From Histomonas meleagridis 2922-C6/04-290x (lineage: Eukaryota; Protista; Parabasalia), in the NCBI GenBank assembly GCA_020184695.1, contig JAANOX010000082.1, positions 1 to 64,000 of the forward strand: a stretch of 64,000 nucleotides of DNA. The letters are read 5' to 3'. A model generated the notes under the pieces. That model made no database searches and was not told the DNA's origin. It saw nothing but the letters and a program-made list of their open reading frames with translations. Position numbers and translations under genes: made by a program. Position 1 is the stretch's first letter, and each line of letters starts with the position of its first letter. Of the stretch, positions 549 through 56,934 are shown piece after piece.

Positions 549-2074
549 AAAAAATATTTTATATAATTTTCAAATATAATATTAAAATCTAAAAAAATTT
601 GGATAAACATTAAGCTTTATACATTAATATCTTTAGCATTTATATCAATTCATTCTTGTTCAAGTAATATATTTACGATTTCTATGTGACCATTTTCAGA
701 AGCAAAAATATGTGCTGTTTGAAATATATATAATAATTTCCAATTATTTTTTTGATATATGATATTGTTAAAACAAATATTAAAATAAATATATAATCAT
801 TTTTGGTATTTATATCAACACCTTTTTGTGTAAGAAGTAATTTAACTATTTCTGTATGTCCACTTTGTGATGCTAATATAAGAGGTGTATTAAATAACAA
901 AAATAATTTCCATAAAAAAAAGTTAATACATCAAATTATTTGTGGAAATGTTTTATAAAATTAATAAACATTTTGAGTATTAATATCAATTCCTTCTTGT
1001 TCAAGAAGTAATTTAACGATTTCTGTATAACCATTATCAGATGCTCTAATAAGTGCTGTATTAAATAATTTAAATAAATTTCAAATATTATTTTGAAATA
1101 TTAAATTATTAAAATAAATATTATCTTTAGCATTGATATCAATTCCTTCTTGTTCAAGAAGTAATTTAACTGTTTCTGTACGACCATTATTAGATGCTCT
1201 AATAAGTGCTGTTTTAAATATTTTAAATTATTTCCAAATATTATTTTGAAATATAAAATTATCAAAATAAATTTCAAATATAACAAATAAATATTTTTAG
1301 TATTAATATCAATTCCTTCTTGTTCAAGAAGTAATTTAACGATTTCTATGTTACCACTTTCAGCTGCTAATATAAGTGCTGTATTAAATATTTTAAATAA
1401 TGTTCAAATATTATTTTGAAATATAAAATTATCAACACAAATATTAAATAAAACAAATAAATATTTTTAGCATTAATATCAATTCCTTCTTGCTCAAGAA
1501 GTAATTTAACAATTTCTATTCTGTCATTTAAAGATGCATTCATAAGTGCTGTATAAAATATTTTAAATAATTTCCAAATATTATTTTAAAATATAAAATT
1601 ATTAAAATAAATTTCATTTTTAGCATTAATATCAATTCCTTCTTGTTCAAGAAGTAATTTTACTACTTCTGTATAACCATTATCAGATGCATTCATAAGT
1701 GCTGTATAAAATATTTTAAATAATTTCCAAATATTATTTTAAAATATAAAATTATCAAAATAAATATTATTTTTAGCATTAATATCAATTCCTTCTTGTT
1801 CAAGAAGTAATTTAACGATTTCTGTACGACCATTATTAGATGCTCTAATAAGTGCTGTATTAAATATTTAAAATAATTTCCAAATATTATTTTAAAATAT
1901 AAAATTATCAAAATAAATATTATTTTTAGCATTAATATCAATTCCTTCTTGTTCAAGAAGTAATTTAACGATTTCTATATGACTATCTCTAGATGCTTTA
2001 ATAAGTGCTGTATTAAATATTTAAAATAATTTCCAAATATTATTTTAAAATATAAAATTTTCAAAATAAATATT
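549..2074 (-). other. Array of 35 putative 17-nt intervening elements alternating with single-codon micro-exons (10 spacers)
   Basis: Spacers 2012-2074, 1859-1921, 1706-1768, 1553-1615 (63 nt), 1383-1462, 1213-1292 (80), 1060-1122 (63), 889-969 (81), 719-798, 549-628 (80). Retained codons read NYGN, NYGN, NYGY, EYGY, NYEN, EYGK, NNEN, NDGN, NHGQ; the last spacer lies past the stop. Confidence 0.75.
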
Positions 2075-3214
2075 ATTTTTAGCATTAATATCAATTCCTT
2101 CTTGTATTAAAATATATTTAACAAGTTCAATATTTCCTGACTTTGATGAAAATACTAAAATATTTTTCGGAATTTGATTACTTTCAAGAAAATGTTTAAT
2201 TAGAAATATGTTTCCAATTCTTGTTGATTCATTAATAATGTTTTCGCAAATTGGCATCCCTTCTTTTTGTAAAAATATAAAAATTTCATAATTATGAGAT
2301 GAAATACACTTCTTTCCAAATTCTTCTAAATTATTAATTTCAGTAATTTTATTTTCATAAAGATATTTAAAGATATTATTTCGATGAAATTCAATTGCTG
2401 CTTCATATCCATCTTTAAATGATGAATGATTTTGTTCACATAAATGAATGATTTCTTCATTTCCACCTGCAACTGCATATTTACCTGCATTTTTTATATT
2501 AGAACCATTCATAAGTAAATATTTAAAACATTTAATTGATCTGAAAAATGCTGCATAATCAATTAATGTAATATTATTTTGATTAATAAATGAATGTCTT
2601 TCATAAACTGATGGTTCAATTGTTTGATTAAAATCAAAATTTGTTTGTGATGATATTTCTTGAAGTTTTCCGATTTCATCATTTCGAATTATTCTTGCAA
2701 TTTCATTCGGATTAGCTCCTTCTTTAATTAATTTCTTATGAAGTTCCCAATCATTCTTTGAAAGTTCTTCAAAGTTTCCCATATTTCGTTTCAAATATTT
2801 ATTTTTTTCTAGAAATTTTTTGGACATGTAATGTATAAAATATGATTCTTCTCTTATCTGTTTAACTATGTTTGATTTACATAAATTTTCTTGAATCATT
2901 CTCTCAAGAAAATAATTTGATTCTTGAGAATGTATATTTAAAATCATTTGTAAAAAAACTTTATGTATTTTACTTTGAATTTGTTTCTTATCTTCAATTT
3001 TTTTTATTTCTTTAATGAAATTCATATAGATTTCGAAATCATTCATACCTGATACAAATGATGAATAAATTATTTGACTAATAAGTAAGTTAAATGAATA
3101 CTGATAATTATTATCAAAGATATCAAACACTGAAATAGCTACTTGAACAACATTTTCTTTATTTAAGGAAAATATTTTTTGTTGAATAAACTGAATTGTT
3201 TCCCAATTGTTCAT
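650..3214 (-). CDS. DUF3447-like N-terminus plus about 9 ankyrin repeats, interrupted by 17-nt elements (ankyrin gene 1)
   Basis: ORF 2045-3214 encodes the family N-terminus (IDYAAFFRSIKCFKYLL, KYAVAGGNEEIIHLCEQ) and runs into EGIDINAKN. Downstream are 90-nt cores such as TALIKASRDSHIEIVKLLLEQEGIDINAKN separated by AT-rich spacers. After removing the 17-mers the frame is open to TGA at 652-650 (one 18-nt element at a T8 run). Confidence 0.8.
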
Positions 3215-8888: not shown

Positions 8889-9410
8889 ATATATAAATAA
8901 ATAAATATCAAATTTTTATTGGAAATATAATTCTCTGAATGAACTCAATTGAGTTATTTCATTGTGGATTTTTAGCATAAATATCTGTGAACATTAATGA
9001 TTTCTCTTCCTTGTTATTAATATAAAGAAATGAATTTTATATTTCATACATTTTCATTAATAGAGTTCAATTACATTCCCAATTTGTTACAAAGAATTCT
9101 TATTTTACATTGCATTATTATGGGGGACTTTTGATTGGATTTCTCTTCCTTATTTTTAAAAAAGCAGATTCATAATTCAGAATGAAGTTACTTTGATCCT
9201 TTGAGATTGGGTTTTATTCTTGTATTTAAGATGCGAATTTTATGTTCCATATTCATTTTCCCTAATAAAGTTCGGTTACATTTCTAATTTGGATTATATT
9301 ACAAAGAATACTTATTTTGTAATGAAAATTTTCATTTATTTAAACAAACATTTCTAAAAATATATTTAAAAATTATTTATTTATTTATTTATTTAAACAT
9401 ATCATTCTAT

Positions 9411-10538
9411 TTAAGAATTCTGCAAAAATCCTTTTCTACTTTTTCGAAGTGGTTCATAATCCGTGTGTCCTTTCGGTGTACATTTTAATATTTCGACAAC
9501 ATTCCCATAATATTTAACAATTCGCTGATACACTTCCGCAAGAAGCATTGAACTTGATTTACTTTCGAAAACTGGTTGTGTTTCATATGATAAAAGAAGT
9601 GAACGTCGAACTTCATCTTTCGAGAATTCATAAAGTTTGTCAATGATCGTCGCATACATTCGAACGTATTGTTCATAAACTTCTTTTTCTTGTTCGAAAT
9701 TTAAAAAGATGTCACTTAAATTAGAAAAAAATGAATTTCGCGTCTTTTCGAATTTGTTAATTAAATTGTTACTCATAACTTCCATAGTTGAAATAATGAT
9801 TTCTAATTGCAGAAGCATTTCAGAATCCAAAATTTCATATTCTTCTAAAAATGGAATAACATATTCTTTCGTAATACGTAAATAATTGCCATATAAAAGT
9901 TCACTTAAATAAAGTTCATTTAAGATTTCACTTCGTCTTTCAACAATTTTTCGTTCGTTTTTCGCTGATGTCGGCAACAATAAAAATTTCGTTATATGAA
10001 AGTGTTAAAAACAAAATGTGTAAAATCTTGAAGACCTTGAAATAACTCAGCAACAAATATTCGTTCTTTAGTAATACCAAAATGTACGTAATATTGGATC
10101 TATAAGTTCAATTTGACTTGGAAAAGGTTAAAAAGAAAAACGATAATCAACAAAATTTCCATTAAAATCACAAACTGGTAAAGTAAATTCTGTAGTTTGT
10201 TCATTATTCATAAATTCGAGCCATGAATTATTAGCTGTAATCGTATATACAATCGTTGGTCCTTGTAAACTTGTGGTTAAAATTAAAATATCTTGAAGTG
10301 GAATGTTTTGAATATCTGAAATTATTGTTTCACCAAATCGTAAACAAAGTTTGTATTGACTTCCAACTTTAAAAAAAAGTCTTGATCTTTCTGAAAAATT
10401 CTTACTTTCATAAAGTTCATTAAATTCTTTCGATGATATATTCTTCGTTTCACCTTTTGGTAAAACTACTGATATTTGAAATAAATCTTTCCAATTGTTT
10501 TCTCCCAATTTAGTTTTGGTAAAAAAAAAGTTTAACAA
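9411..10538 (-). pseudogene. Disrupted RhoGEF (DH domain) gene
   Basis: EILNELYLSELLYGNYL...EVYQRIVKY...EILKCTPKGHTDY is a DH signature. The upstream part is separated by TAA at 10128-10130 and further stops/frameshifts between 10128 and 9980; no intact PH domain follows. Confidence 0.65.
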
Positions 10539-10709
10539 ACAAACATAGTCAAATTCAAAACATTTTTATTTTCGTTTCATCATTTTTTATTCAGAAACTT
10601 TTATGCTCTTCGCTTTTTTAAATAAAATCATATAAGATTTTGCATAACGCTAGCTTTATTTCTTTGTACTTTATGGATTTCCATATTTGTTTTGGAAAAA
10701 TCATTTATT

Positions 10710-10932
10710 TTAATCATTGTGATATTTATATAAAATATTTAGAAACAAAGAATGACCAATTCAAAGTAAAAAAGAAGAAATAAAAAGTAAATCTAATATC
10801 ATTCAAGTTTTTATTGACTATATCTTAAAATATAAATCACAAGAATCATATTTTCTAATTGAACAAGTTACTAATAAAAATTTAATTGAATCGAATATTA
10901 TTTTATTCATTTTTTTGTTTTTCATTAATTAA
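10710..10932 (+). pseudogene. N-terminal remnant of the DUF3447-like ankyrin family
   Basis: QSKKEEIKSKSNIIQVFIDYILKYKSQESYFLIEQVTNKNLIESNII resembles HSQESNYFLERMIQENLCKSNIV (gene 1) and NKQESYYFMGKMIDKNLV (gene 2). In-frame TGA at 10753. Confidence 0.6.
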
Positions 10933-13421
10933 TTGAACAATCTCTGTATTACCGTTTTCGTTTGCATGGTTAATTGCTGTTTTAAATAGATTGTTTAAAT
11001 ACTAAATATAGTTTTAAAATCCAAAATTTTCAACACAAGCAACGAAGAAAGCAAATTAACATCTTTAACATTGATATTAATTCCTTCTTGATTAAGAAGC
11101 AACTTAACTATTTCTGCATGACCATTTGAAGATGCTAATATCAATGCTGTTTCCTACATTTGAATTGAATTCCAAAAATAATATTGAAATTTTAAAATAA
11201 AGAATTAAAATTTGAAGAAAATATATAAATATTTTTAATATTTATATTAATTCCTTCTTGATTAAGAAGCAACTTAACGATTTCTACATGACCATTTTCA
11301 GATGATAACATTAATATTGTATTAAATAATATAAATAATTTCCAAATGTTGTATTGAAACATCAAATTAATAAAATAAATTTTAAATAAAATAAATAAAA
11401 ATCTTTAGCATTGATATTTATTCCTTTTTGTTCAAGAAGTAATTTAACTATTTTTATATGACCATTTGAAGATGCTTTCATAAGTGCTGTTCTAAACATT
11501 TTTTGCAATTTTTAAATAGTTTTTTTAAACATAAAAATATTAACATTAAAACAATAATATTAAAATGAATATCAAATAAAACAAATAAATATCCTTAGAA
11601 TTAATATTTATTCCTTTTTGTTCAAGAAGTAATTCCACTATTTCTGTGTGACCATTTTCAGATGCTTTCATAAGTGCTGTTTGAAATATTTTAAATAATT
11701 TCCAAACACTATTTTAAAATACCAAATTCTTAAAATAAATATTTTGATCATTAATTTTAATATCTTTTTTCGCAAGAAGTAATTTGACAATTTCTGTGTA
11801 ACCTTTCCAAGATGCTAACATAAGTGCTGTCCAAAATATTTCAAATAATTTCCAAATGTTAATATAATACTCCAAATTATTTACTTTAATATCAAATAAA
11901 GAACATAAATAGTTTTAGCATTAATATCAATTCCTTTTTGTTCAAGAAGTAATTTTGCTATTTCTGTGTATCCCTTTCTAGATGCATAAATAAGTGCTGA
12001 AAACAATATTTAAAATAATTTCCAAATCTTACTTTGATATATGAAAACATGAAAACAAAATTTAATTCAAATAAATAGATATTTATAGCATTAATATCAA
12101 TTCCTTCTTGTTCAAGAATATACTGAACAAGTTCTAAGTTTCCTGATTCCGATGAAAATACTAAAATATCCTTTGGAATTGGATTATTTTGGAGAAAATG
12201 TTTAATAATTATTAAATTTCCCATTTTTGCAGCTATAACAAAAAAATTTTTGTCAACTTTCCCATCACCTTCCAAAAACGAATAAACTTGATAATTACCA
12301 CAAATTATACAAAGGATTGATAAAGAATAATAAAACATTTCATCACATGGCAATGAGTAATTGATATTATAATCATCAATATCATCGTTAAACACTAAAC
12401 TTAAATTTGAATATCCTTCTGATTTATTTATTTGATCAATTTTATTCTCATAAAGATATTTAAAGATATCATTTCTATGAAATTTAATAGCTGCTTCGAA
12501 AGAACCATCAAAAGATAAATGCTTTTGTTCACATAAGTGAATAATTTCAAGATTTCCTCCTGCAATTGCAGCTTTACCTACATTGTCTAAATTAGAACCA
12601 TTCATAAGTAAATGTTTAAAACATTTAATTGATCCAAAAAATGCTGAATAATCAATTAATGTAACATTATAACGATTAATAAAGTCGCATCTTTCATAAA
12701 GTGAAGGCTCAATTGTTTGATTATAATCAAAATTTGTTTGTGATGAAATTTCTTGAAGTTTTTCAATTTCATCATTTCGAATGATTTGTGCAATTTCATT
12801 CGGATTATGTCCTTCTTTAATTAGTTGCTTATGAAGTTCCCAATCATTCTTTGAGAGTTCTTCATAATTATCATAAAAATATTTTTTTGCAGGATTCCTA
12901 AAGCCACCATTTTCAGAGGAAAAATCGATATTATTAAATGTTTGGTTTTGTTTTTCTTTAATTTTATTTTCCGCTTCTTCACTGTAAGGGAAAAAATATT
13001 TTGCTGGTACAAAAGATCTTGAATGAGTATATTTCTTTTTTATAAAATCTAAATCTACTAAATTTTTATCAATCATCTTTCCCATGAAATAATATGATTC
13101 TTGTTTATTGATATTGTATATACATTTTTTAAAAATATCAATGATCTTTGGATAATGTGTATTTATATCTTCTTCTTTAGTTTGTATCAATTCCAAAAGA
13201 TTAAAATGTATTTCATATGTATTCCTTTGTGATGAAAATACATAGTAAATTATATTACTAATAATAGAATTTAATGTATATGGCAAATCGAAATCAAATA
13301 AATTTATAATTTTTTCAACTGATAATTCAAGATTTTCTTTAGTTAAATCAATTATTATTTGTTCAAGTTCACAGAGTAATTCCATATATGTGTGATGATA
13401 AGTTGATTCCTCATTTTCCAT
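10903..13421 (-). CDS. DUF3447-like N-terminus plus 7 ankyrin repeats, interrupted by 17-nt elements (ankyrin gene 2)
   Basis: Paralog of gene 1; ATG at 13421 (MENEEST). Six exact 90-nt cores (11911-12000, 11741-11830, 11591-11680, 11401-11490, 11231-11320, 11061-11150) plus a terminal repeat TAINHANENGNTEIVQLINEKQKNE ending at TAA 10905-10903. Removing the 17-mers leaves no stop or frameshift. Confidence 0.85.
10981..12080 (-). other. Array of 28 putative 17-nt intervening elements alternating with single-codon micro-exons (7 spacers)
   Basis: Spacers 12001-12080 (KHGF), 11831-11910 (DGGW), 11681-11740 (60 nt, GGQ), 11491-11590 (100 nt, DCYKR), 11321-11400 (KDGN), 11151-11230 (KKGE), 10981-11060 (VWSK). 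All are exact multiples of 20 nt. Confidence 0.8.
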
Positions 13422-13489
13422 TAATGAAGATTTCACTTCACATATCTTAAATTTGATCGTCTCTTCATTCAATTTTTAAGGCTAATCAA

Positions 13490-15904
13490 ATGCCTGATAT
13501 CCCTATATCAAAACTTCTATTAGAATTTTGTAGAAAAGATACTCAAGCACGTAACGGATCTTCAGAGCCTCCTGATCCGTTAGATCACAATGCCTTATAT
13601 GAGTATTTATTGAATATTGCAGAAAATGATTTGGAACAATTATCAGAAAATTTCAACAGAATATCACATTATAAATATGTTGTCCCTGAGTTTTCTATTC
13701 TTCCAGATTTTGTTAAAGAAAAAATTAAAAAACTTACAGAAGAAAAATCATATTCCAAAAACTTTGAACAAAAAATGCAACCATTTATCAGAATTCTTTC
13801 ACTATTAGAAGGCACAAATGCGCTTGATATTCTAGAAGTTGCTGTTAATTATGTTTTTCATAATATCAAGAAAAATAATCAATTTCCAATGTCTTTTATT
13901 CACATGTTTAGTGACACTGTTGTTGAAGATTTTTCCAAAGAAACATTTATAAGTGTAAAAGATTTCTTTTTTGATGCATTTGATACGCAACAAAGATCAG
14001 CAGCAATTGCAGTTTTTGCCAATTTATCAGCTGACTTTGAAAGAATTGATTCTAGCCTTGACAAGCAAATCAACAATTTAATTATTGATTCACTTTCTTC
14101 TGAAGAATATGATCTTCAATTCTCAGGATTACTTCTTCTTCAAAAATATTCTCGCAGATTCCGTTACGAGCCAGAAATAGCACCACCCACTGAAGATCTT
14201 CTTCAATTAGTACTTCCATTTTTCAATTCATCCGACCAATCATTATCAGAACAATGCACCAAAACCATCAAGTCTCTTATTAAGTTCGGCATATTTATCA
14301 GTCCTGAATCCATCCAATCCATTCTTGAACTTTTTAATCAAATATCTCAAGATTATTATCAACAATATTTCCAAATCATTCATCAACTTTTTTATCCATC
14401 CAACTCCGACGAAGAGTTTGACTTTGTTCCTGACCTCAAATACCTTCTTCCAGTTCGAGAATTTCTCATTGGGCAAATCACCGATGAAGATTCAACAGTA
14501 TATTCAAAGAGTTATTGCATTGATTCCATCTCCGATCTATTTAGTATTCGCCCGACTTTTGTCCGTAAGTATTATCCCATGATTTTTGAGAAAGTTCAAA
14601 AGATCATCAAAACCAAAACTTATTCGGTATATTATCTCATAACACCATTTCTTATTGAAACGTATAAACATTTTCCGAAATACAAAACTGCAATTTCGAA
14701 ATTAATAATATCTATTTGCGACATCTTTTCTAACGCTAAAAAGAATTACTCGACAAGCATTGATGTTTGTGTTGACATTTGTACATTAATCGGAATGGAT
14801 GCGATTGAGTTTTTACCGACAGTTTCATCATTTGCTATTCATGCGATTGGTTCCAATAATGATAATGAATCAATCCGTGGTTGTTTTGCTTTTTTAGAGA
14901 TGATACCAAAACTTAATGATAAAGTCTCTAATTTAGTCTTTGAGAAATGTTTCACGAAAGCAATGACAACGAAAGAAACAGGTTCATTAGTTGTCTATGT
15001 GCAATTAATGCAGAAACTGATTAAACATCATAACATTACATCTAAAAATAAAGACAAATTCAGCGAAACGATTTTATCAATGAAACATCCATTGATTGGT
15101 AAAGTTCCGCCATTTTCATTTCCATTGTTTGCGAAATATATTAATGTGTACGTCGCTAAATGCGAAAAGAATCTTCCGAAAATATTGTTGAATTATACAA
15201 CTTGGTTAAATAAAACAAAACAATTTTCGGGATTGTTACTTAAGACAATTAACATCGCACTTAAACGAGATATTATCACTGATGAAGCTGTCGTTGACAT
15301 AGGAAAATGTTGTTTAAACATATTAAAGTCTTCGAATCTTGATAAACTTAACTTCGTTAATGCAAACGCTTGTTTCGAATGTTTGCGAATTATTAACGAA
15401 ACGAAAAATAAATTGTCACCGCCATTCGAACAAATCATTGAACAAGTCATTCGATTTGTGAATGAATTTAATGAGGAACAAATCGGAAGTGTTAAGATGC
15501 AAAGAATCGTCGAAACATTCCCCAAAATGTGCGACTTAATATTTGATGTATACGCAAAGAATGATGAAGCTGAAGTGGACGAAGAAGTTATGAACTTGTT
15601 AGTCGAGTTGTTGCCGTTCCCACCGGAAGTAAAATGTAATAAATATATTATCGACGAACTAATCGCAATCGTACAAAAGGAAAAATTCCAATTTGTAAAA
15701 GTGAAAATTTTAAGAGTTTTCGCAAATTTGATCGCAATAGAGAAGAAAGAATTGGAGGTCTTTATGCTCAAGGAAGAAATGATAAATAAAATGATCGACG
15801 TGTTGAGGAAAGAAGTGGAAAAGGATCAAAATATGTTCGCGAAAATAGTGAAACATATATTGAACCAAAAGGAAAAAGAAAAATTGGAAAAGTTATTAAA
15901 GTAA
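13490..15904 (+). CDS. Alpha-solenoid (HEAT/ARM-like) protein, 804 aa
   Basis: Long intact ORF with an amphipathic helical pattern reminiscent of importin-beta-like trichomonad proteins; no specific ortholog recognised. Confidence 0.6.
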   Translation: MPDIPISKLLLEFCRKDTQARNGSSEPPDPLDHNALYEYLLNIAENDLEQLSENFNRISHYKYVVPEFSILPDFVKEKIKKLTEEKSYSKNFEQKMQPFIRILSLLEGTNALDILEVAVNYVFHNIKKNNQFPMSFIHMFSDTVVEDFSKETFISVKDFFFDAFDTQQRSAAIAVFANLSADFERIDSSLDKQINNLIIDSLSSEEYDLQFSGLLLLQKYSRRFRYEPEIAPPTEDLLQLVLPFFNSSDQSLSEQCTKTIKSLIKFGIFISPESIQSILELFNQISQDYYQQYFQIIHQLFYPSNSDEEFDFVPDLKYLLPVREFLIGQITDEDSTVYSKSYCIDSISDLFSIRPTFVRKYYPMIFEKVQKIIKTKTYSVYYLITPFLIETYKHFPKYKTAISKLIISICDIFSNAKKNYSTSIDVCVDICTLIGMDAIEFLPTVSSFAIHAIGSNNDNESIRGCFAFLEMIPKLNDKVSNLVFEKCFTKAMTTKETGSLVVYVQLMQKLIKHHNITSKNKDKFSETILSMKHPLIGKVPPFSFPLFAKYINVYVAKCEKNLPKILLNYTTWLNKTKQFSGLLLKTINIALKRDIITDEAVVDIGKCCLNILKSSNLDKLNFVNANACFECLRIINETKNKLSPPFEQIIEQVIRFVNEFNEEQIGSVKMQRIVETFPKMCDLIFDVYAKNDEAEVDEEVMNLLVELLPFPPEVKCNKYIIDELIAIVQKEKFQFVKVKILRVFANLIAIEKKELEVFMLKEEMINKMIDVLRKEVEKDQNMFAKIVKHILNQKEKEKLEKLLK

Positions 15905-16262: not shown

Positions 16263-16380
16263 AGGAAGCAGCACTATACGTTCCCAGGAAGTCTCCCAGC
16301 CTAGTACTAATATAGCCCGCGATTGCTTAATTTCCAGGTTCGAAATGGAGCTGGATGTATCCAATCGGGTATGGCCGCTT
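16263..16380 (-). rRNA. 5S rRNA
   Basis: Reverse complement AAGCGGCCATACC...CTCCATTTCGAACCTGGAAATTAAGC...TTAGTACTAGGCTGGGAGAC...GTGCTGCTTCC, about 118 nt, with 5S hallmarks and a T-run Pol III terminator. Confidence 0.95.
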
Positions 16381-16899
16381 CAATAATAAAATTTATTATA
16401 TATTCTTAAACATTTATTAATTTTATTATTTAATTATAAAGGTTTTGCAAAATTAAAAATTTCGTTCTTCTTTGACACTTTTGAATAAACCATACAAAAT
16501 GTCGGACGACGGTTAAAAGTGACAGCATCAGAATTTTTCATATCTGACCATATAGCTATTCAAAATGTTTGAATGATTATTTAGAACCTCATTAATAATC
16601 ACAATATATTATTTCTCATAAAATTTGTCCTAATTAATAATATTATAAATTTATAATATCTTTCATATCTTAATAAATTCTGACATACAATACAAATATC
16701 TTTTATTTGAAAACTCATTGAAAATCATTTTAACTTTATTTTTGACTTCAAAATTTTAACTCAAATATTAATACTCGAATTGTTATCATCGCTCAACAAA
16801 CACATATGTTTTTCTAATGATTTTGTGTTTCTATTGCGGAATGAATCTCTTTTTTTTCTGACGAGCTTTTGTGGGGTACCCCATCCACCGTTAACCAAA

Positions 16900-38308: not shown

Positions 38309-38380
38309 GCTTTACTAGTCTAACGGTTAGAACAGTAGCTTTACACGCTATTGATCCAGGTTCGACTCCTGGGTAAAGCA
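38309..38380 (+). tRNA. tRNA-Val(TAC)
   Basis: Acceptor GCTTTAC/GTAAAGC, anticodon stem GTAGC/GCTAT with loop TTTACAC, T-arm CCAGG-TTCGACT-CCTGG, followed by a T-run. Confidence 0.92.
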
Positions 38381-38730: not shown

Positions 38731-38810
38731 GTTCATCTGGCCGAGTGGTCCAAGGCGCTAGTTTAAGGCACTAGTCCGAGAGGGCGTGGGTTCGAACCCC
38801 ACGGTGAACA
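38731..38810 (+). tRNA. tRNA-Leu(AAG)
   Basis: Acceptor GTTCATC/GGTGAAC, D-arm GGCCGAGTGGTCCAAGGC, loop TTAAGGC, long variable arm, GTGGG-TTCGAAC-CCCAC, followed by a T-run. Confidence 0.95.
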
Positions 38811-49426: not shown

Positions 49427-50064
49427 GCGAAACCTCATTAATAAATGGTTTGACCATTAGAATTTTTTTTATAACTGTGTGGATATACTCAATGAAGTGG
49501 TGAAAAGCAATTTCGATGGTATTTTACTCATCTTCAACTGAAGCATTTTCCAGGAGGTTATGAGAAAACGTTAAACGGTTTTTTTGAGGATCGATTTAAA
49601 CGGTTTCTTAGAACATCGATTTTGCTATAAAAAATAAAAATAAATGTGATGTTCATTTATCTGTTTTTTGATGCTAAGAATATTATATGCATAGCTTAAC
49701 ATATGATGCCAAAATTGCAACACAATTGGCTGATCAATTTTTGAAAATGCATTTCGAAATGTAGTGTTCAATTAGACAACAACGAATATAATAGCAAATA
49801 AGGACATCAACAATTTGTATATATACAGACAGTTTAGTTTTGCATATAAATTCATTAATTCATGAAAATTCCGCTTCGATAATTGTTGATGCAACCGTTT
49901 GTCGTATTTTCCTTAACCTCCTGAAACTCACAAACATATAATTGACTAACTCTGTTTACTTCTTTCCTGCTAAAATCCTGAAATGCCTTGTTAGAACGAT
50001 GGTTTTTTCTATACTTTATTTGAATAGCAGTAGACCGTTTATTATAAGGGCGGGAAAATTGGCG

Positions 50065-53000
50065 ATGGATGATACCCCTCCAGACAAATTCCAGGTCATA
50101 TTTAATACGCCATCACTTATTAGCAAATCGATTACATGCTTTGATATTTCAAAGAGAGCCGTCCATTTGATGCAATTGTATAATCGAATTTCTTTTAAGA
50201 TCAAATGGAGAAATTTTTCCAAAAAAATTCTCTTAAAAAGGAAACTTTATGAATACAGAAAAATCAATATACTTGATACAAAATTTTATCAAGTTCATAC
50301 CAATATAATGCGAACTTCATTCTTTAAATGGCGCTTAAAATTTAAATTCATTAAATTTGTTAATTCATATAAAATAAATATTCTAAAAAATAAAAAGGAT
50401 CTTTTGCAGCGACAAGCTTTAAAGGAACATCAACAAGAAATAAGAAATAAATGGGAAAAAATCACCAAAAAATTATTACAACAGAGAAAAACAAAAAAAT
50501 ATTATAAAATAATACAGAAACATTTTTATGATAAATGGAAATTTAGGAAAAACGAAAGAATACAAATCAGAGAAACATGGAAATCATTCAATAAAAAGTT
50601 AAACATTAATAATATAAAACATATCAAAGCAAAATATGAAAATTCTATTCAACAAATTGAACGATATCAAAGACTTTATTTATTAGTTATAAATGATGAA
50701 TATAAAAATGAATTAATTGATTCGTTTCAAGCAATTTATATTTATAGGAAATGGATTAAATTTAAATCATTTGTATTACAAAATTATTATAGAAAGAAGT
50801 TATTACAAAATAAATTTATTGTTATAACAAAGAAATTATTGTTTAATGACATTGTTTTAAGATTAAAAAGAAATTTTTATCAATTTAAACTTGAACAATT
50901 TTCTAAAAATTTATTGTTAAATCAAAGAAAGCAAATTTTAATTCATTTTAAAATATGTTTAACTTATTATAACAAATGGAAATTTATGCAAAAATTAAAT
51001 CGTTTAGCAAAAAAAGTTTTATTGGATTCATATTCGAAAATAAAACTTCCTTTACGTAAAATTATAAATGTAAATACGAAATTTTATGAATATTATTTGT
51101 TATTTAATTTCTTTACGAAATGGAAAACAAAATTATTAATACAAAACATTCCAATTGATTTTTTAATTGAAGTAAATGTTAAATATGAAAATCCAAATTT
51201 CGATTTTGTTAATCAACAAAATATTTCACATTTATTGCATTATAATAAAATTGATAATACAAAAATAGAATTAAAAGCTAAAAAAGCTTCGCAAAATATA
51301 AAATATAATTTGAAATATATTAATATTCCAATAAAAGTTTTTAATTTCCAAAGAAATATTCCATTAAAAGAAAATGTTCCAAAAATTTATATTGATTTCA
51401 AATTTAATGATTTGGTATCAAATCAAACTAAAACATTATCATATTTCAAAACGAATAAAAATATGTTTAATAATATTGATATTCATTATGAATATAATTT
51501 TGATTTAAATTCGATTGTTTTGGATAATTATAATGTGCATTTTAACCAAATATGTAAACATCAAATTTCATATCTTAAACAATTACAAAACATAAAATTA
51601 AGAAAATATTCACAAAAATTAATTTTCAATTTTGTATCAAAAAGATATAATTCTCATAATATGAATTTAACTAAACACAAAATATTTCAATTTAATGATT
51701 TGTTCAAATTAAATTTCTCATTAAAATATCAAATTCCAAAAACAAAACAATTTAATTTTGCATTTTTCGATAAAGATTATTATATTAATATATACATTGA
51801 TAAATTACCAAAAGAAAAATCCTTAAAATTTAATTTTATAAACATTAATTCATTGGTATCAATTTTAAATTATCAAAGAATTCATTTTAAGAAAGAAAAA
51901 CTTAAAGATATCAAATTAAATATTATGTTAAATGTTAACAAATCTTTTGATACACTTCAACATAATTCTTCGATTAAATATTTCTCTAAAATCAAGCCGA
52001 ATGTTGATAAGTATTTCGATTCAGCACAAAATGTGATCAATTTGTCGATTTGTTTACCGCATATTTTCCTGATAAGTTATCTCCTTAATTATCAATGTGA
52101 CTTTAAACATGAAAAATATTTACATCAAAGCAAATTAGTTAAACATAAAAATATTTTAAAGTTAGCATTTTTACCATTTCAAATAACAAAATATTTAAAT
52201 ATTATTAAACGCCAAAACATTCCAAATCCATTAATTGATAATGTTTCGTATCAACAAAAGTTTTCATATTTAAATTTATCAATTTCACCAATATATTTAT
52301 ATAATACCAAAGTACAGATTCCAATGTTATCTAATCCAATACAGCATAAGCATTTTAATGATAAATTAACTTTTGATATTCCAATTATAACACAAAACGA
52401 AACAATTTCTTCATTTGTTATGTATCCAAAGCAAAATGTATATAAAAACATTTGTTTTGATAAATTTATCATGAAACCAAAATTATTAATTCCAAGAAAT
52501 AGTATTTCTTCAATGTTAAATTATAATAAAGTTATTAAAGTGACAGAAAAGTTACCAAAAATTTCATATAAATTAAATTTCATTTTAGATTTAGATAGTT
52601 ATTTAACAAAAATAACAAAATTTTTATATGAAATTAAGTTAAATGATCATAATTTTGCAAATAAAATGATAATTCCAAATTATAAACTGAATATTAATTA
52701 TAAATTTACTATAATTGGAAATGTATTTAACTTTATCACATTTCATAATTTAACTAAAGAATATTATGATAAAAATATGAAAACATTAAGTAAAACATCA
52801 AATTATATATCATTAACTTTTGATAAATTGATAATAAAAAGGTTTTTCACTATTATTAAACCAATATTTTATTATACAAATACTTATAATAAGTTTTTGC
52901 TAAATGATTATATTTCTGAAATTAATATTAAAGGAAAACAGAACAATTATCAAATAACTTTAGGAAAATATTATGAAATTTCTCCAATTTTTAATTTTTA

Positions 53001-56000
53001 TAAGGAATTTAATAAAAACATTTTAGACAAATATTCTTATATCAATTTTAACACTGAAATAAACATCGATAATTCCATCATTAATAAGAACTTAAATAAA
53101 TCTTTGATATTTAATTTTGCAAAAGATTTTAATAAGGATTTGCTAAGTGAATATGTCTCAAGAGTTACCTTTAAAGATAAAACGATTGAAACTTCACTAA
53201 TTGTTAGAAATATTTTCATTTATCCAATTTATTATTTTGTAAAAGATATATATAAAAATATATTTGATGTATCTGAAGTTAATATTAAATATAAAGATTT
53301 TGATTATTCATTTGTTGATCATTTTGATATTTCTCATTTGTTTAATTTTGAAAATCATTTTAATGAAAATATTATGGAAAGAAACATTGAAGATATTGCA
53401 ATTAAAGAGTATAAAATTGATTATTTAAATATATCAAACTACAAATGCATTGTATCTTTTTTGCATAATATTACAAATGAATTTCATATCAAAGATGTAT
53501 TCAATGAATATTTAACTAATATATCAAATATAAAACTACAAATAGATTACGCAGATATTATAAATAGTGTTTTTGATATTTCTTCTTTGTTGATGAGTGA
53601 ATTTAACAATGATATTACTGATAAATATATTTCAAATATCACTATTAAAGAACCAATAATTAATTACTTGAGCATTATAAAAAATAATTTGATTTCTTTC
53701 ATATATAATTATGAAAAACTATCTAGACCAATTGTTATAAATGAAATCAATTTAAATAGTGTTATCAATGAATACATAAAGTTTGATAAATTCATTGATG
53801 TTTCAGCGTTATTAAATCATTTTTATATATTTCAACAAAACTACCTCAACAAATATTGCAATAATATAAACATCAAAGATATGAACATTGATTTTAATTT
53901 TATATACAAATATTATTCCATTTCAGCACTACTCCGTTACGAAAACGAATTTAATAATAAGCTTTTAAATGAATATACTGCAAATGTTACGATTCACACA
54001 CCAAAAATTAAATATTTAAATGTAATTAATAATAATTATAATATTTCTCTCTTAATTAACTTCAAAAATAGTTTTAATGAAAACCTTCTGAATGAATATA
54101 CAGCAAATGTTACTATTTGCACACCGAAAATTAAATTTTTGAAAGTTATTGATGGATATTATGATGTTTCTTCTTTGTATAATTTTGTATTTGATTTTAA
54201 TGATGATCTTTTAAGCGAATATATTAAAAACATTAAAGTTAATGAACTAAATACTAATTACTTAGTTTTTGCTAATGAAAGCATTAATGTTTATTATCTT
54301 CTTTGTTTTGCAAAATTGTTTATTAAAGATTTTATTAATGCATTTTCTTTAAACACAAAAATTACGAATGTAAACATTGATTATTTAAATAATATTATAA
54401 ATAAAAGTTTTAATGTTTCTCCAATATTCAATTTTATCAGTGAATTCAACAATGATATTATTGATAAAAATTCAAATATCATTATTAAAGAACCAAGAAT
54501 TAATTATTTAAACATTATAAATAATAATTCGATTTCTTTTTTGTATAATTATGAAAAACTATCTAAACCAAATGTTGTATATGAAATTAATTTAAATAAT
54601 ATTATCAATGATTACATCAAACTTGATAAATTTATTTATGATATCAATATTTCTTCGTTATATCAATATGAAAATGACATTTGTAAAAATCTCCTGAATG
54701 AATATCCATCAAATATATCCATTCAACTACCGAAAATCAATTTTTCTGATTTTATAAATTATAAATATATTTCTTTTATATTTAATTTTGAATTTGAATT
54801 CAACAAAGATTTACTGAGTGAATATATATCATATATTAATATTAAAGAACTAATGATTTATAATTCGTATCCAATACAAAAATTTTATTCACTTTCTTTA
54901 TATAATATTACAAATAAATTCATAATTAGTAATATATTGCAGAATAATTTAACGAATATAACTACTCAAAAATATGTTTTCACTTATTCAAATCTTCTAA
55001 ATAAAATATTTAGTATTTCATCAATTAATAATTTTGTTGTAGGATTTCATAAAGATATTCTTAATAAATATTCGTCAAAAACAAATAAAACAAATTTAAC
55101 ATTTAATTCTATTGAACTTATCAATAATATTTCATTTATATCTAATTATAAAATTCATGTGTTTAACAAAAATATTCTCTGTGAATATAAGTACAAAGAA
55201 CTAAAACTTAATTATTTAAACAATATTCTTAATATTTCATATCTCTATAATTTTGTAAATGGATTTGATAACGATATTTTAAGTAAATATTTTTCTGATT
55301 TAATAATTAGAGCTCCGAAATTTGATTATTCACATCTGACAATTAAAAACAGCTTATCATTTATTTCCTATTATTATTGTATTAAAGAATTTAATAATAT
55401 AAATAATTATGTAACAAATGTTAAATACCAAAATGCAATGCTCAATTTAGATCTTATTCATAATTATAATATTTCATTTATGTTTAATTTTAAAAAAGAT
55501 TTTAATATAAATTTTGTTCTCAATGAATATAGCAAAAATATTAAAATTAAAAACTTAAAATTTGATTTTTTAGATTTTGTAAAAGAAAACATTACAATTT
55601 CTTCAATTATTAATATCAAAAAGGAATTTAATACAGATATAATCAGTAAATACACATCCGACATAAATATGAATAAATTTGAATTACAAATCTTTAATAT
55701 CCCAATTCCCAATTTTATAAATATATTCAAAAAAGAATTACAAAACAGCAAATTATTTAAATACGAAGAATTTCATTATATTAACGCACAAAGTAATTTC
55801 GGTTTGCCTTTTAATGGATTTCCTTCTCTAATAATAATGAGAAACTTCACAATTCCAAAGCACCAATTTCATATGTTAAATAATTTTGATGAATTTCATG
55901 TTTCGAAAATGTTTAATGTTAAATATTTTCACAATTTCGTTATAAATAATATGTTTAATGCGCACAAATATTTATTTAATTATATTTATATCAAGAAAAT

Positions 56001-56934
56001 GTTAACAAAATTTGATATCGAAAGTTTTCGTTATTCATTTTTACCTACAAATTTGAAATTAGATGTTTACAAATCAGTTGAATTCTTAAATATATTTTCA
56101 ATTTCTATTAAAAAGAATTTTGAAGAAAGATTTATAAATGTAAAATATCAAAAATCATTTGAAATAAAATCGTTAGGAAGAAATAATGTAAATTCGTTGC
56201 GTAATTTTATTAAAGCACCAAAAATAAGTTCAACTTTTGTTAAATATAATAAAATGTTATTCTCACTGGATGCCAACATAATAGAAGTTTATAATCACCA
56301 GAAATTTTTATATAATTTTTCACGTAAACAAATTCCAACACAAAACATTTATGGTAAACTTTCATTACAAAACATTGTTCATTTAGATTGTAAGCAATTA
56401 ATTAAATGTAAATCATTTGGTTATTATTCAAAACAACAAATTCCAATACAAAATATTAATGATCAATTTCGTTATCACATTTCATTCAATACATTTCCAA
56501 CAAATTTCAAGTATTTAACTTCTTTTTTATATTTGTTTTCTCATAAACAAACACAAAAGCAAAACATTGATGATGAACTTTCATTACAAAACATTGTTCA
56601 TTTAGATTGTAAGCAATTAGTTAAATGTAAATCATTTGATTATTATTCAAAACAACAAATTCCAACACAAAACATTAATGATCAATTTCGTTATCACATT
56701 TCATTTAATACATTTCCAACAAATTTCAAGTATTTAACTTCTTTTTTATATTCATTTTCTCATAAACAAATTCCAAAAAGAGAAATAATTCTCTCTCCAA
56801 ATATAACACATATAAACCTCAACAAATTAGTACAACATAAAATGTTAATAAAATATTTCCAATTATCACATAAAACGCAATCGTTACCAAATATTTCACT
56901 GAAAACTGAATTTAATTTACATAATTTGCTATAA
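50065..56934 (+). CDS. Very large N/I/K/F/Y-rich repetitive protein, possibly extending to 57348 across one TAA
   Basis: About 2290 codons open in extremely AT-rich DNA. Periodic F/Y-x-KW motifs at the N-terminus and roughly 38-aa FNxDLLxEY-type repeats centrally. ATG at 50065. Confidence 0.7.
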   Translation: MDDTPPDKFQVIFNTPSLISKSITCFDISKRAVHLMQLYNRISFKIKWRNFSKKILLKRKLYEYRKINILDTKFYQVHTNIMRTSFFKWRLKFKFIKFVNSYKINILKNKKDLLQRQALKEHQQEIRNKWEKITKKLLQQRKTKKYYKIIQKHFYDKWKFRKNERIQIRETWKSFNKKLNINNIKHIKAKYENSIQQIERYQRLYLLVINDEYKNELIDSFQAIYIYRKWIKFKSFVLQNYYRKKLLQNKFIVITKKLLFNDIVLRLKRNFYQFKLEQFSKNLLLNQRKQILIHFKICLTYYNKWKFMQKLNRLAKKVLLDSYSKIKLPLRKIINVNTKFYEYYLLFNFFTKWKTKLLIQNIPIDFLIEVNVKYENPNFDFVNQQNISHLLHYNKIDNTKIELKAKKASQNIKYNLKYINIPIKVFNFQRNIPLKENVPKIYIDFKFNDLVSNQTKTLSYFKTNKNMFNNIDIHYEYNFDLNSIVLDNYNVHFNQICKHQISYLKQLQNIKLRKYSQKLIFNFVSKRYNSHNMNLTKHKIFQFNDLFKLNFSLKYQIPKTKQFNFAFFDKDYYINIYIDKLPKEKSLKFNFININSLVSILNYQRIHFKKEKLKDIKLNIMLNVNKSFDTLQHNSSIKYFSKIKPNVDKYFDSAQNVINLSICLPHIFLISYLLNYQCDFKHEKYLHQSKLVKHKNILKLAFLPFQITKYLNIIKRQNIPNPLIDNVSYQQKFSYLNLSISPIYLYNTKVQIPMLSNPIQHKHFNDKLTFDIPIITQNETISSFVMYPKQNVYKNICFDKFIMKPKLLIPRNSISSMLNYNKVIKVTEKLPKISYKLNFILDLDSYLTKITKFLYEIKLNDHNFANKMIIPNYKLNINYKFTIIGNVFNFITFHNLTKEYYDKNMKTLSKTSNYISLTFDKLIIKRFFTIIKPIFYYTNTYNKFLLNDYISEINIKGKQNNYQITLGKYYEISPIFNFYKEFNKNILDKYSYINFNTEINIDNSIINKNLNKSLIFNFAKDFNKDLLSEYVSRVTFKDKTIETSLIVRNIFIYPIYYFVKDIYKNIFDVSEVNIKYKDFDYSFVDHFDISHLFNFENHFNENIMERNIEDIAIKEYKIDYLNISNYKCIVSFLHNITNEFHIKDVFNEYLTNISNIKLQIDYADIINSVFDISSLLMSEFNNDITDKYISNITIKEPIINYLSIIKNNLISFIYNYEKLSRPIVINEINLNSVINEYIKFDKFIDVSALLNHFYIFQQNYLNKYCNNINIKDMNIDFNFIYKYYSISALLRYENEFNNKLLNEYTANVTIHTPKIKYLNVINNNYNISLLINFKNSFNENLLNEYTANVTICTPKIKFLKVIDGYYDVSSLYNFVFDFNDDLLSEYIKNIKVNELNTNYLVFANESINVYYLLCFAKLFIKDFINAFSLNTKITNVNIDYLNNIINKSFNVSPIFNFISEFNNDIIDKNSNIIIKEPRINYLNIINNNSISFLYNYEKLSKPNVVYEINLNNIINDYIKLDKFIYDINISSLYQYENDICKNLLNEYPSNISIQLPKINFSDFINYKYISFIFNFEFEFNKDLLSEYISYINIKELMIYNSYPIQKFYSLSLYNITNKFIISNILQNNLTNITTQKYVFTYSNLLNKIFSISSINNFVVGFHKDILNKYSSKTNKTNLTFNSIELINNISFISNYKIHVFNKNILCEYKYKELKLNYLNNILNISYLYNFVNGFDNDILSKYFSDLIIRAPKFDYSHLTIKNSLSFISYYYCIKEFNNINNYVTNVKYQNAMLNLDLIHNYNISFMFNFKKDFNINFVLNEYSKNIKIKNLKFDFLDFVKENITISSIINIKKEFNTDIISKYTSDINMNKFELQIFNIPIPNFINIFKKELQNSKLFKYEEFHYINAQSNFGLPFNGFPSLIIMRNFTIPKHQFHMLNNFDEFHVSKMFNVKYFHNFVINNMFNAHKYLFNYIYIKKMLTKFDIESFRYSFLPTNLKLDVYKSVEFLNIFSISIKKNFEERFINVKYQKSFEIKSLGRNNVNSLRNFIKAPKISSTFVKYNKMLFSLDANIIEVYNHQKFLYNFSRKQIPTQNIYGKLSLQNIVHLDCKQLIKCKSFGYYSKQQIPIQNINDQFRYHISFNTFPTNFKYLTSFLYLFSHKQTQKQNIDDELSLQNIVHLDCKQLVKCKSFDYYSKQQIPTQNINDQFRYHISFNTFPTNFKYLTSFLYSFSHKQIPKREIILSPNITHINLNKLVQHKMLIKYFQLSHKTQSLPNISLKTEFNLHNLL
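56325..56770 (+). repeat. Near-perfect 219-nt tandem duplication
   Basis: LSLQNIVHLDCKQL.KCKSF.YYSKQQIP.QNINDQFRYHISFNTFPTNFKYLTSFLY occurs twice (anchors at 56359 and 56578). Confidence 0.9.

Follow-up and report, generated by a model that had tools for sequence, protein, structure and literature searches.

A Histomonas meleagridis ankyrin gene with spacers in place of hairpins

The stretch of DNA analysed here (the window) comprises positions 1–64000 of contig JAANOX010000082.1 from Histomonas meleagridis, a parasite and pathogen of poultry. Its minus strand carries an ankyrin-repeat gene, hereafter gene 2, which is identical in both strain assemblies and, like a second gene of the window (gene 1, see below), is uncalled in the annotations of two H. 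meleagridis assemblies. Reading the minus strand and parsing it by script showed that the ankyrin hairpins are replaced by seven spacers of 80, 80, 60, 100, 80, 80 and 80 nt within the stretch 12080–10981. The spacers are made up of 20-nt modules with no letter left over, each module being a 17-nt element (17-mer) followed by a triplet (17+3 layout), and the inner exons between the spacers are 90 nt each, corresponding to 30 residues of one ankyrin repeat. All features are on the minus strand:

12081–13421, minus: exon 1, an open reading frame; likely start is the first in-frame ATG (13421–13419); DUF3447 and first ankyrin repeats; ends ...GIDINAIN at 12081
12001–12080, minus: spacer 1, 4 modules; AAA 12063–12061, CAT 12043–12041, GGA 12023–12021, TTT 12003–12001 (KHGF)
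11911–12000, minus: exon 2, SALIYAS...DINAKT, 30 codons
11831–11910, minus: spacer 2, 4 modules; GAT 11893–11891, GGA 11873–11871, GGA 11853–11851, TGG 11833–11831 (DGGW)
11741–11830, minus: exon 3, TALMLAS...KINDQN
11681–11740, minus: spacer 3, 3 modules; GGT 11723–11721, GGA 11703–11701, CAA 11683–11681 (GGQ)
11591–11680, minus: exon 4, TALMKASENGH...NINSKD
11491–11590, minus: spacer 4, 5 modules; GAT 11573–11571, TGT 11553–11551, TAT 11533–11531, AAA 11513–11511, AGA 11493–11491 (DCYKR)
11401–11490, minus: exon 5, TALMKASSNGH...NINAKD
11321–11400, minus: spacer 5, 4 modules; AAA 11383–11381, GAT 11363–11361, GGA 11343–11341, AAT 11323–11321 (KDGN)
11231–11320, minus: exon 6, TILMLSSENGH...NINIKN
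11151–11230, minus: spacer 6, 4 modules; AAA 11213–11211, AAA 11193–11191, GGA 11173–11171, GAA 11153–11151 (KKGE)
11061–11150, minus: exon 7, TALILASSNGH...NINVKD
10981–11060, minus: spacer 7, 4 modules; GTT 11043–11041, TGG 11023–11021, AGT 11003–11001, AAA 10983–10981 (VWSK)
10903–10980, minus: last exon, TAINHANENGNTEIVQLINEKQKNE; stop TAA 10905–10903

Read at bases 18–20 of each module, the triplets give KHGF, DGGW, GGQ, DCYKR, KDGN, KKGE and VWSK, i.e. 28 triplets without a stop, with glycine penultimate in five of the seven spacers. The frame closes: from the ATG at 13421 to the TAA at 10903 there are 2519 nt, and subtraction of 28 × 17 = 476 nt leaves 2043 nt, or 681 codons. Translated in frame, spacers 2–7 run into a stop after 9–22 codons, and reading through spacer 1 results in a frameshift and a stop at 11958. 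An earlier note on this DNA had proposed the seven hairpin readings, their 28 sense triplets, the penultimate glycines and the TAA end, all of which were reproduced, and its statement that simple read-through yields no intact product likewise holds for every spacer. The same is true of the exact 20-nt register that it had described despite diverged spacers, identity among the elements within gene 2 being 62–66% as compared to a 57% baseline among different module positions, with no change in element length despite the diverged interiors. The 17+3 layout of gene 2 in the DNA is real.

Protein likeness and paralogues

Upstream of the repeats, exon 1 matches DUF3447 (PF11929; E = 2.1e-08; 34.4 bits with a cut-off of 26.9; residues 300–361), and the uninterrupted part of the gene matches Pfam Ank, Ank_2, Ank_3 and Ank_4. 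Ankyrin repeats are tandem units of about 33 residues, made of a helix-turn-helix and a β-hairpin with the motif G-x-T-(A/P)-L. Once the triplets are included, the repeats of gene 2 measure 33–35 residues and five of the seven contain G-x-(T/S)-(A/I)-L. Judged by its sequence, gene 2 qualifies both as an ankyrin repeat protein gene and as a member of the DUF3447 trichomonad ankyrin family. When compared with three natural ankyrin proteins, the product read as 17+3 scored 149.6, 125.4 and 121.4 bits, as compared to 61–109 bits for whole-spacer deletion or shifted registers; for P0049, the values were 149.6 bits for the 17+3 reading, 91.1 for whole-spacer deletion and 79.5–109.2 for shifted registers. 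Of seven natural ankyrin proteins compared, six gave the 17+3 reading the top score, and for the seventh it lay at most 2 bits below the best. These scores bear out the earlier claim that the triplets rebuild an ankyrin protein.

A search with the N-terminal exon of gene 2 returned only paralogues, at no more than 52% identity, and no transcript. Gene 2 shares 45–52% identity with two H. meleagridis paralogues annotated as 'caskin', and 51% identity, over part of the protein, with TRFO_31612 of Tritrichomonas foetus. A 52-aa profile built from an exon and its read-through retrieved four protein candidates, none of them from H. meleagridis, from a collection apparently lacking peptides of its RNA contigs. 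This is a very large family, in which cross-mapped depths reach millions. One member lies in the window itself:

650–3213, minus: gene 1, a paralogue of gene 2 and alike in design; spacers measure 60 or 80 nt in eight cases and 81 nt in one; in-frame TGA 652–650

One element of gene 1 is 18 nt long, and beyond its terminal TGA a TAG lies within the triplet register of the next repeat, as expected once selection ends. Same-position modules of genes 1 and 2 are 69–77% identical. Gene 2 had been said to confirm the layout independently; the layout stands, but with gene 2 a paralogue of gene 1, the claim of independence is too strong. The 17+3 design recurs in a further H. meleagridis gene, on another contig (NLGQ, KSDQ, KIDS, NNGK), and in a metagenome relative. 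Two H. meleagridis paralogue models on another contig end at the first spacer.

The 17-mers and their triplets

Element statistics were compiled over the 55 modules of genes 1 and 2 which, the repeats being duplicated, do not represent 55 independent trials. All elements sit between codons (phase 0). Their AT-rich consensus is ATTTA-N8-ATTT, conserved at positions 1–5 and 14–17. Position 1 is A in 44 of the 55 elements, G in six, T in four and C in one; positions 16–17 are TT in almost all, a single element ends in AG, and C is nearly absent throughout. An A occupies position 14 in 44/55 and position 11 in 40/55 elements, and the conserved A that lies three bases ahead of the 3′ end could be a branch point.

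Over the 55 modules, the triplet register itself (register 0) is free of stops and has 45 G/C letters and 13 codons of the form GGN; the 17 registers lying wholly within the 17-mers hold no GGN codon and 4–20 G/C letters each. Only two modules have T in the middle of the triplet, though T is the commonest letter at many 17-mer positions. The middle base is A or G in 53/55, which is the expectation for hydrophilic loop residues, and 53/55 triplets end in A or T.

These numbers bear on a rival model, in which every spacer is removed whole as a single non-canonical intron, 60–100 nt long or 57–97 nt where its last triplet stays in, the repeats have 30–31 residues and no hairpin tip, and the 20-nt period is a relic of tandem duplication. 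Removing whole spacers and keeping the last triplet are both in frame and free of stops and, the modules being mutually homologous, GGA could be inherited rather than selected. However, such introns leave unexplained why the middle base is confined to A or G, why stops are missing and glycine is enriched in one register, and why spacer lengths are held to exact multiples of 20, and the corresponding ankyrin scores are clearly lower.

Within the 64-kb window, 17+3 strings are restricted to ankyrin hairpins. Eight candidates for lone 17-nt elements bridging long open reading frames elsewhere in the window look like chance overlaps of alternative frames, none being convincing. Folding of six spacers as a possible recognition signal gave z values of −1.74 to +0.97 relative to shuffled sequences and no common structure. 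The parabasalid ACTAAC...AG motif is absent from the elements, with matches in the window not above chance, and inspection by eye found no element borders that could be shifted to GT-AG or AT-AC ends with the product unchanged. With GT-AG ends, the ACTAAC...AG motif and a significant fold all absent, no known machinery is predicted to remove the 17-mers.

DNA contigs include the spacers, and RNA contigs break at predicted element borders

DNA contigs include spacers 2, 4, 6 and 7 at a depth of ~500–560, equal to that of flanking single-copy DNA (507):

11828–11933: DNA contig over spacer 2, single-copy depth
11467–11593: DNA contig over spacer 4, depth 557
11079–11273: DNA contig over spacer 6, 195 nt, depth 504; reproduced by a de Bruijn graph built from nothing but the window
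10837–11103: DNA contig over spacer 7, depth 501

The spacer-bearing layout is the main DNA form of gene 2. The elements are short, AT-rich and precisely bounded, as are some eliminated sequences, and might in principle be lost from the DNA of those cells that express the gene, in the manner of ciliate internal eliminated sequences. Of the readings weighed here we give this one the least credence: spacer DNA occurs at flanking single-copy depth, joined forms were not seen in the DNA run and both strain assemblies are the same at the locus. Parabasalids are not known to separate germline from soma.

Gene 2 is transcribed, as RNA contigs without mismatches cover 12093–12468 and 12840–13385 of exon 1. 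Further RNA contigs part from the genome at three predicted element borders. Two (X3 record 12 and X4 record 19) match exon 3 without mismatches until the genome match ends exactly at 11741, and continue for 32 letters. Two others (X3 record 10 and X5 record 26) match 11249–11323, again without mismatches, diverge at 11323/11324, i.e. the 3′ border of the last 17-mer of spacer 5, and have 24 more letters. Finally, a 132-nt RNA contig (X3 record 9, X5 record 25) matches 11079–11153 without mismatches, followed by 57 other letters. Its composition of 35+13+9+75 requires nine letters between exon 6 and the GAA triplet, which only the 17+3 model fits. That model predicts 127 nt for a pure unitig, and 132 nt with a preceding 35-nt shared node if one graph branch is pruned; single-intron models predict 115–123 nt.

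In RNA contigs of paralogues, the hairpin codons are contiguous, e.g. GAT AAA TAT GGA AAA ACA GCA CTT directly after ...AAT GCT AAA. Of the 15 best-supported contiguous-hairpin joints, 14 had a depth of 0 in the DNA run, with some joints uncounted in a very deep DNA run. Transcripts of the family bear contiguous hairpins that DNA contigs are without. A word search for spacer 4 was too weak to count as evidence: six of six sampled words were found in DNA run X1 and no RNA run was listed, and DNA run X2 also gave 0.00 despite identical assemblies.

Contiguous hairpin codons in paralogue RNA, and not in DNA contigs, are a further observation that one intron per spacer does not explain. Although the RNA contigs of gene 2 prove three borders only and no inner ones, that model is disfavoured relative to 17+3 excision, and we regard it as improbable. 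No greater probability attaches to the idea that the genes with spacers are silent or in decay, and that contiguous-hairpin RNA stems from ordinary paralogues at other genomic sites that have no interruptions. The size of the family and its cross-mapped depths would suit this idea, as would the in-frame TGA and decayed last repeat of gene 1, and the letter-by-letter contiguous-hairpin contigs do belong to paralogues rather than to gene 2. Yet the breaks in RNA contigs identical to gene 2 over 75–93 nt coincide exactly with element borders, there is transcription of the unique N-terminal exon, and joined forms are missing from the DNA run at nearly all top joints. Nor would decay preserve a length of exactly 17 nt in 28 elements and keep stops out of 28 triplets while the interiors diverge.

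The phrase '17+3 code' in the earlier note implies decoding by the ribosome; the RNA evidence points instead to removal from the transcript. Retention of the 17-mers in the mRNA, with the ribosome passing over each one, whether through translational bypassing or under a literal 'read 3, skip 17' code, would go along with the absence of splice signals, and the phase 0 placement of all elements and the isolation of exact codons hint at a link to the reading frame. We nonetheless consider it very improbable, as the RNA contigs do not track the genome through the elements, and the matching take-off and landing codons and structured gap of known bypass elements were not seen here. To judge by T4 gene 60, it would be extremely inefficient to make a protein through 28 bypasses in series.

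Proposed excision of 17-nt elements from RNA

In our favoured interpretation, gene 2 is probably a live, expressed ankyrin gene with DUF3447 whose 28 17-mers are excised from RNA, joining single-codon micro-exons. Each hairpin codon (three to five per ankyrin β-hairpin) would be preceded in the DNA by one 17-nt AT-rich element; upon departure of all 28 elements from the transcript, the micro-exons would fuse with the 90-nt exons, generating a 2043-nt reading frame for a product of about 680 residues with full 33–35-residue repeats. We infer exact excision of all 28 elements, by a machine of the splicing type. In the way that minimal-length introns are handled, such a machine would read the conserved ends and measure off a fixed length, perhaps with the help of variant snRNAs.

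More broadly, and with somewhat less assurance, we favour the view that H. meleagridis and close relatives possess an undescribed class of intervening sequences of fixed 17-nt length and non-GT-AG type, excised in tandem from pre-mRNA, confined to the hairpin loops of a large ankyrin gene family that present annotations overlook, and handled by either a re-tuned spliceosome or a new measuring endonuclease-ligase. We found no description of the 17+3 layout in the literature on very short introns, single-codon exons, or Histomonas introns and ankyrins.

Were excision to hold true, 3-nt exons between 17-nt elements would set a new joint lower bound on exon and intron size, accurate RNA splicing would be possible without the border signals of known systems, and the minimal needs of splice-site recognition would become directly testable in a culturable protist. 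Because both window genes are uncalled and two paralogue models end at the first spacer, much of this ankyrin family is probably missing when H. meleagridis genes are counted, from proteome databases and where virulent strains are compared with attenuated ones. Gain or loss of a 20-nt module would alter loop length by one residue per step and, since the micro-exons encode loop tips, the usual ligand contacts, gain, loss or skipping of modules could be a route to rapid variation.

Comparison with known systems

The 17-mers differ from each intervening sequence considered. U2-type introns have GT (or GC)/AG ends, whereas G is first in 6/55 and AG last in 1/55 17-mers. Parabasalid introns of Trichomonas type A/B are defined by ACTAACACACAG or (T)CTAA...AG and a length of at least 23 nt (PMC12316389); the motif occurs in none of the elements, and both the 17-nt elements and the 3-nt exons are smaller than any so far shown in parabasalids, the shortest reported intron being 23 nt (PMC12316389). 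According to the H. meleagridis genome paper, the species has only 573–638 introns, at most one per gene. For U12-type AT-AC introns one expects ATATCCTT at the 5′ end, AC at the 3′ end and a TCCTTAAC branch site; the consensus here is ATTTA...ATTT with C nearly absent. Translational bypass requires the element in mature mRNA, and gene-specific RNA contigs do not run into the 17-mers. An element akin to an internal eliminated sequence should be missing from bulk or somatic DNA, whereas spacer contigs have depths of 501–557 as compared to 507 in the flanks. Structure-defined introns (bulge-helix-bulge, euglenid non-conventional) have a conserved end-joining fold, of which the six folded spacers gave no sign.

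Among known systems, minimal-length spliceosomal introns (15–16 nt in Stentor coeruleus, 18 nt in Bigelowiella natans, about 17 bp in mikrocytids, 23–25 nt for Trichomonas type B) resemble the 17-mers in being very short and of fixed length, with a U-rich interior, signals at both ends and, under the reading proposed here, removal at the RNA level. They nevertheless keep GT-AG and, in Trichomonas, also the CTAA(C) branch motif (PMC12316389), whereas the 17-mers have A(T/A)TT...ATTT ends; and they are single and scattered over many genes, whereas the 17-mers form strings of three to five, one codon apart. Animal and plant micro-exons (3–27 nt) illustrate that single-codon exons exist and can be spliced, as proposed here, but they lie between long canonical introns and have special enhancers, in contrast to serial 3-nt exons with 17-nt flanks in a spacer smaller than one ordinary intron.

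Euglenid non-conventional introns likewise lack GT-AG borders and interrupt protein-coding genes of the nucleus, and their removal takes place at the RNA level, as is proposed for the 17-mers. However, they vary in length and adopt a stable end-joining fold, whereas the 17-mers are fixed in length and fold no better than shuffled sequences. Bypass elements (T4 gene 60; byps of Magnusiomyces mitochondria) are, like the 17-mers, short non-coding in-frame inserts without splice signals that can be numerous and missed by annotation, but they remain in the mRNA, whereas the RNA contigs here leave the genome at 17-mer borders. The trichomonad DUF3447-ankyrin proteins (TRFO_31612; H. meleagridis 'caskin') share the N-terminal architecture of gene 2, DUF3447 followed by ankyrin repeats, and in the Tritrichomonas protein sequences, unlike in H. 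meleagridis DNA, the repeats are visible with contiguous hairpins.

Layout of gene 2

Parsing of the minus strand bore out the layout that the earlier note had described for gene 2, with its spacers, its exact 20-nt register and the peptides coded by the retained triplets.

Features of gene 2, in 5′ to 3′ order
13421-13419, minus: likely start ATG, the first in-frame ATG
1341 nt, minus: first exon, with the DUF3447 domain and the first ankyrin repeats (Pfam)
seven of 90 nt, 30 codons each, minus: middle exons
12080-12001, minus: spacer 1, 80 nt, giving KHGF
11910-11831, minus: spacer 2, 80 nt, giving DGGW
11740-11681, minus: spacer 3, 60 nt, giving GGQ
11590-11491, minus: spacer 4, 100 nt, giving DCYKR
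11400-11321, minus: spacer 5, 80 nt, giving KDGN
11230-11151, minus: spacer 6, 80 nt, giving KKGE
11060-10981, minus: spacer 7, 80 nt, giving VWSK
78 nt, minus: final exon, with stop TAA at 10905-10903

All seven spacers are whole multiples of a 20-nt module whose final three bases supply one residue, and all seven sit at the β-hairpin position of their ankyrin repeat. Once the triplets are included, repeat length is 33-35 residues, five of seven repeats bearing the usual G-x-(T/S) turn. From ATG to TAA the gene spans 2519 nt; subtraction of 28 × 17 = 476 nt leaves 2043 nt, or 681 codons, and the whole gene thus closes in frame. Straight read-through meets a stop 9-22 codons into spacers 2-7 and a frameshift in spacer 1; as the earlier note had held, it cannot work. 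Upstream, only 68 nt (13422-13489) separate the likely ATG from that of a divergent 804-codon gene, and the promoters of the two genes must share this region.

We compared the 17+3 reading (17-nt element omitted, triplet kept) with whole-spacer deletion, with retention of the last triplet only and, as controls, with five shifted kept-triplet registers, using phmmer against seven natural ankyrin proteins drawn from the searches. The 17+3 reading scored highest for six of the seven queries and came within 2 bits of the top for the seventh. Against one of these proteins, P0049, it reached 149.6 bits, while retention of the last triplet gave 105.3, whole deletion 91.1 and the shifted registers 79.5-109.2.

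Spacers in DNA and RNA contigs

For the comparison of DNA with RNA we used Logan contigs from H. meleagridis, covering one DNA run and three RNA runs. Spacers 7, 6, 4 and 2 are covered by DNA contigs without mismatch at a depth of 501-557, the flanking unique DNA standing at 507; since the two depths agree, the spacer-bearing form is the main DNA form. An assembly artefact is thereby ruled out, as is a germline-only element, and elimination of the elements from DNA is not supported, given that they are present there at full depth. A second DNA run, X2, lacked all six sampled words of spacer 4 (11491-11590), though both assemblies are identical there; this is a weak, uninformative test, and the missing words probably reflect a contig gap over AT-rich sequence.

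Exon 1 is transcribed, as RNA contigs match 12093-12468 and 12840-13385 without mismatch. In the repeat region, no RNA contig that matches gene 2 without mismatch continues along the genome into a spacer. One matches 11079-11153 and then runs into 57 other letters (132 nt in all, with the same length and span in two runs), another matches 11249-11323 followed by 24 other letters, and two match exon 3 up to 11741 and then continue with 32 letters of other sequence. The break at 11153 falls on the first base of the last kept triplet in spacer 6, that at 11323 on the equivalent base in spacer 5, and that at 11741 on the final base ahead of spacer 3.

The length of the 132-nt contig was compared with predictions from 31-mer graphs of model transcripts. 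Built on the window alone, such a graph reproduces the 195-nt DNA contig 11273-11079, whose limits are defined by a 35-nt stretch common to exons 6 and 7.

Predicted length of the RNA contig, and length with the 35-nt shared node
17+3: 127 nt; 132 nt
last triplet kept: 118 nt; 123 nt
whole-spacer deletion: 115 nt; 120 nt

The 132-nt contig can be accommodated only with nine letters separating exon 6 from GAA, provided that one graph branch was pruned. Elsewhere in the family, RNA contigs carry contiguous hairpin codons, e.g. ...AAT GCT AAA + GAT AAA TAT GGA AAA + ACA GCA CTT, coding DKYGK; others code DKGGR, DEWGK and DQGD+F, the letters being those of paralogues and not of gene 2. At the family's hairpin points, DNA contigs run on into 17-mers, and 14 of the 15 best-supported joints had depth 0 in the DNA run, some joints going uncounted because that run is very deep. 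We consider it likely that the 17-mers are excised at the RNA level, the letter-by-letter evidence coming from paralogues: each 17-mer would be cut out of the transcript, leaving single-codon exons. A ribosomal code that skips the 17-mers is not supported, since the elements are not kept in RNA. The interpretation in the earlier note was largely right, with "code" and "independently" as overstatements.

Conservation of the modules

Module statistics pool 55 modules from gene 2 and its paralogue gene 1, whose repeats are duplicates of one another, so that the counts are not independent trials. The 17-mers follow the consensus ATTTA-N8-ATTT; their ends are conserved and their A/T interiors vary freely. 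The triplet register is free of stops and contains 13 GGN codons and 45 G/C letters; the 17 registers wholly inside the 17-mers hold no GGN and 4-20 G/C letters each. A or G occupies the central position of the triplet in 53 of 55 modules, the mark of hydrophilic loop residues, and T, the most frequent base at many positions of the 17-mers, occupies it in two; at the third position A or T stands in 53 of 55.

In gene 2, 17-mers at the same position are 62-66% identical, against a baseline of 57% between different positions (exon third positions, 70%), indicating interiors near saturation. None of the 28 elements changes length, despite many runs of A or T; the constraint lies on length. Gene 2 hairpins hold three, four or five modules, and in five repeats of gene 1 the difference from the 80-nt form is exactly one 17-mer, the freed codon being fused to the exon; this arithmetic indicates that the elements are discrete units. 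One gene 1 element (929-912, minus, in the 81-nt spacer 969-889) measures 18 nt, from a run of eight T, and is either a homopolymer assembly error or a real exception to fixed length.

Decay of the gene copies is not supported, as both the lengths of the elements and their triplets have been conserved. In gene 1 an in-frame TGA (652-650, minus) stands where sister repeats have GGA, and downstream, to about 540, lies one more repeat, which gives an internal control for triplet selection. It carries a TAG in the triplet register, which looks like decay or relaxed selection once translation ends.

Relatives and annotation

Gene 2 has diverged from gene 1, to which it is paralogous, and is not the independent confirmation that had been proposed. 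It is identical in the two NCBI assemblies of H. meleagridis, which also encode the neighbouring 804-residue protein identically; the coordinates of that protein place the window at JAANOX010000082.1:1-64000 of GCA_020184695.1. Neither has a called gene at about 8900-13490, leaving gene 2 unannotated; gene 1 (about 650-3213, minus), like gene 2 (10903-13421, minus), is absent from the called genes of both. The best database relatives of gene 2 exon 1 are two H. meleagridis "caskin" models (45-52% identity) and metagenome proteins. One "caskin" model stops exactly at the first spacer, and the DNA downstream holds four 80-nt spacers whose 17+3 register gives NLGQ, KSDQ, KIDS and NNGK. With both genes uncalled and paralogue models ending at the first spacer, the family is probably largely missing from annotation and proteome databases.

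A gut-metagenome relative shares the 17+3 design (RAGY), and Tritrichomonas homologues have contiguous hairpins in the repeats visible in their sequences. A distant DUF3447-ankyrin relative (L003:1780-2619, a Logan contig of SRR31428992) has AT-rich spacers of 88, 52 and 49 nt (hand count) at the hairpin position; these are not 17+3, one fits 4 × (19+3), and unit length may differ between lineages.

Elsewhere, a single 2330-codon ORF (49942-56934, plus) lies in the region of the window richest in A and T (GC 18-23%), and tandem repeats of 108/219 nt occur towards the end of this ORF. The 64,000 nt contain no snRNA and carry three RNA genes:
16263-16382, minus: 5S rRNA gene
38309-38380, plus: tRNA gene
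38731-38810, plus: tRNA gene

Comparison with known introns

Among the 55 elements, G stands first in six and AG last in one, departing from GT-AG ends; the parabasalid ACTAAC...AG motif is not found in them, and no fold of the spacers is better than that of shuffled sequence. Full-text searches on 17-nt introns, single-codon exons, Histomonas introns or ankyrin, and non-canonical parabasalid introns did not return the 17+3 layout. If excision is real, this would be an intervening sequence fitting no described class. The H. meleagridis genome is reported to have 573-638 introns, with no gene bearing more than one (PMC8529796). In the latest survey of Trichomonas introns, the parabasalid minimum is 23 nt, and the smallest introns known to its authors are those of Stentor (15 nt) and Bigelowiella (18 nt) (PMC12316389). 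The elements resemble minimal-length spliceosomal introns in their conserved ends, rigid length and a conserved A located three bases from the 3′ end, features for which we would place a re-tuned spliceosome ahead of a dedicated cut-and-join enzyme as the candidate agent of removal.
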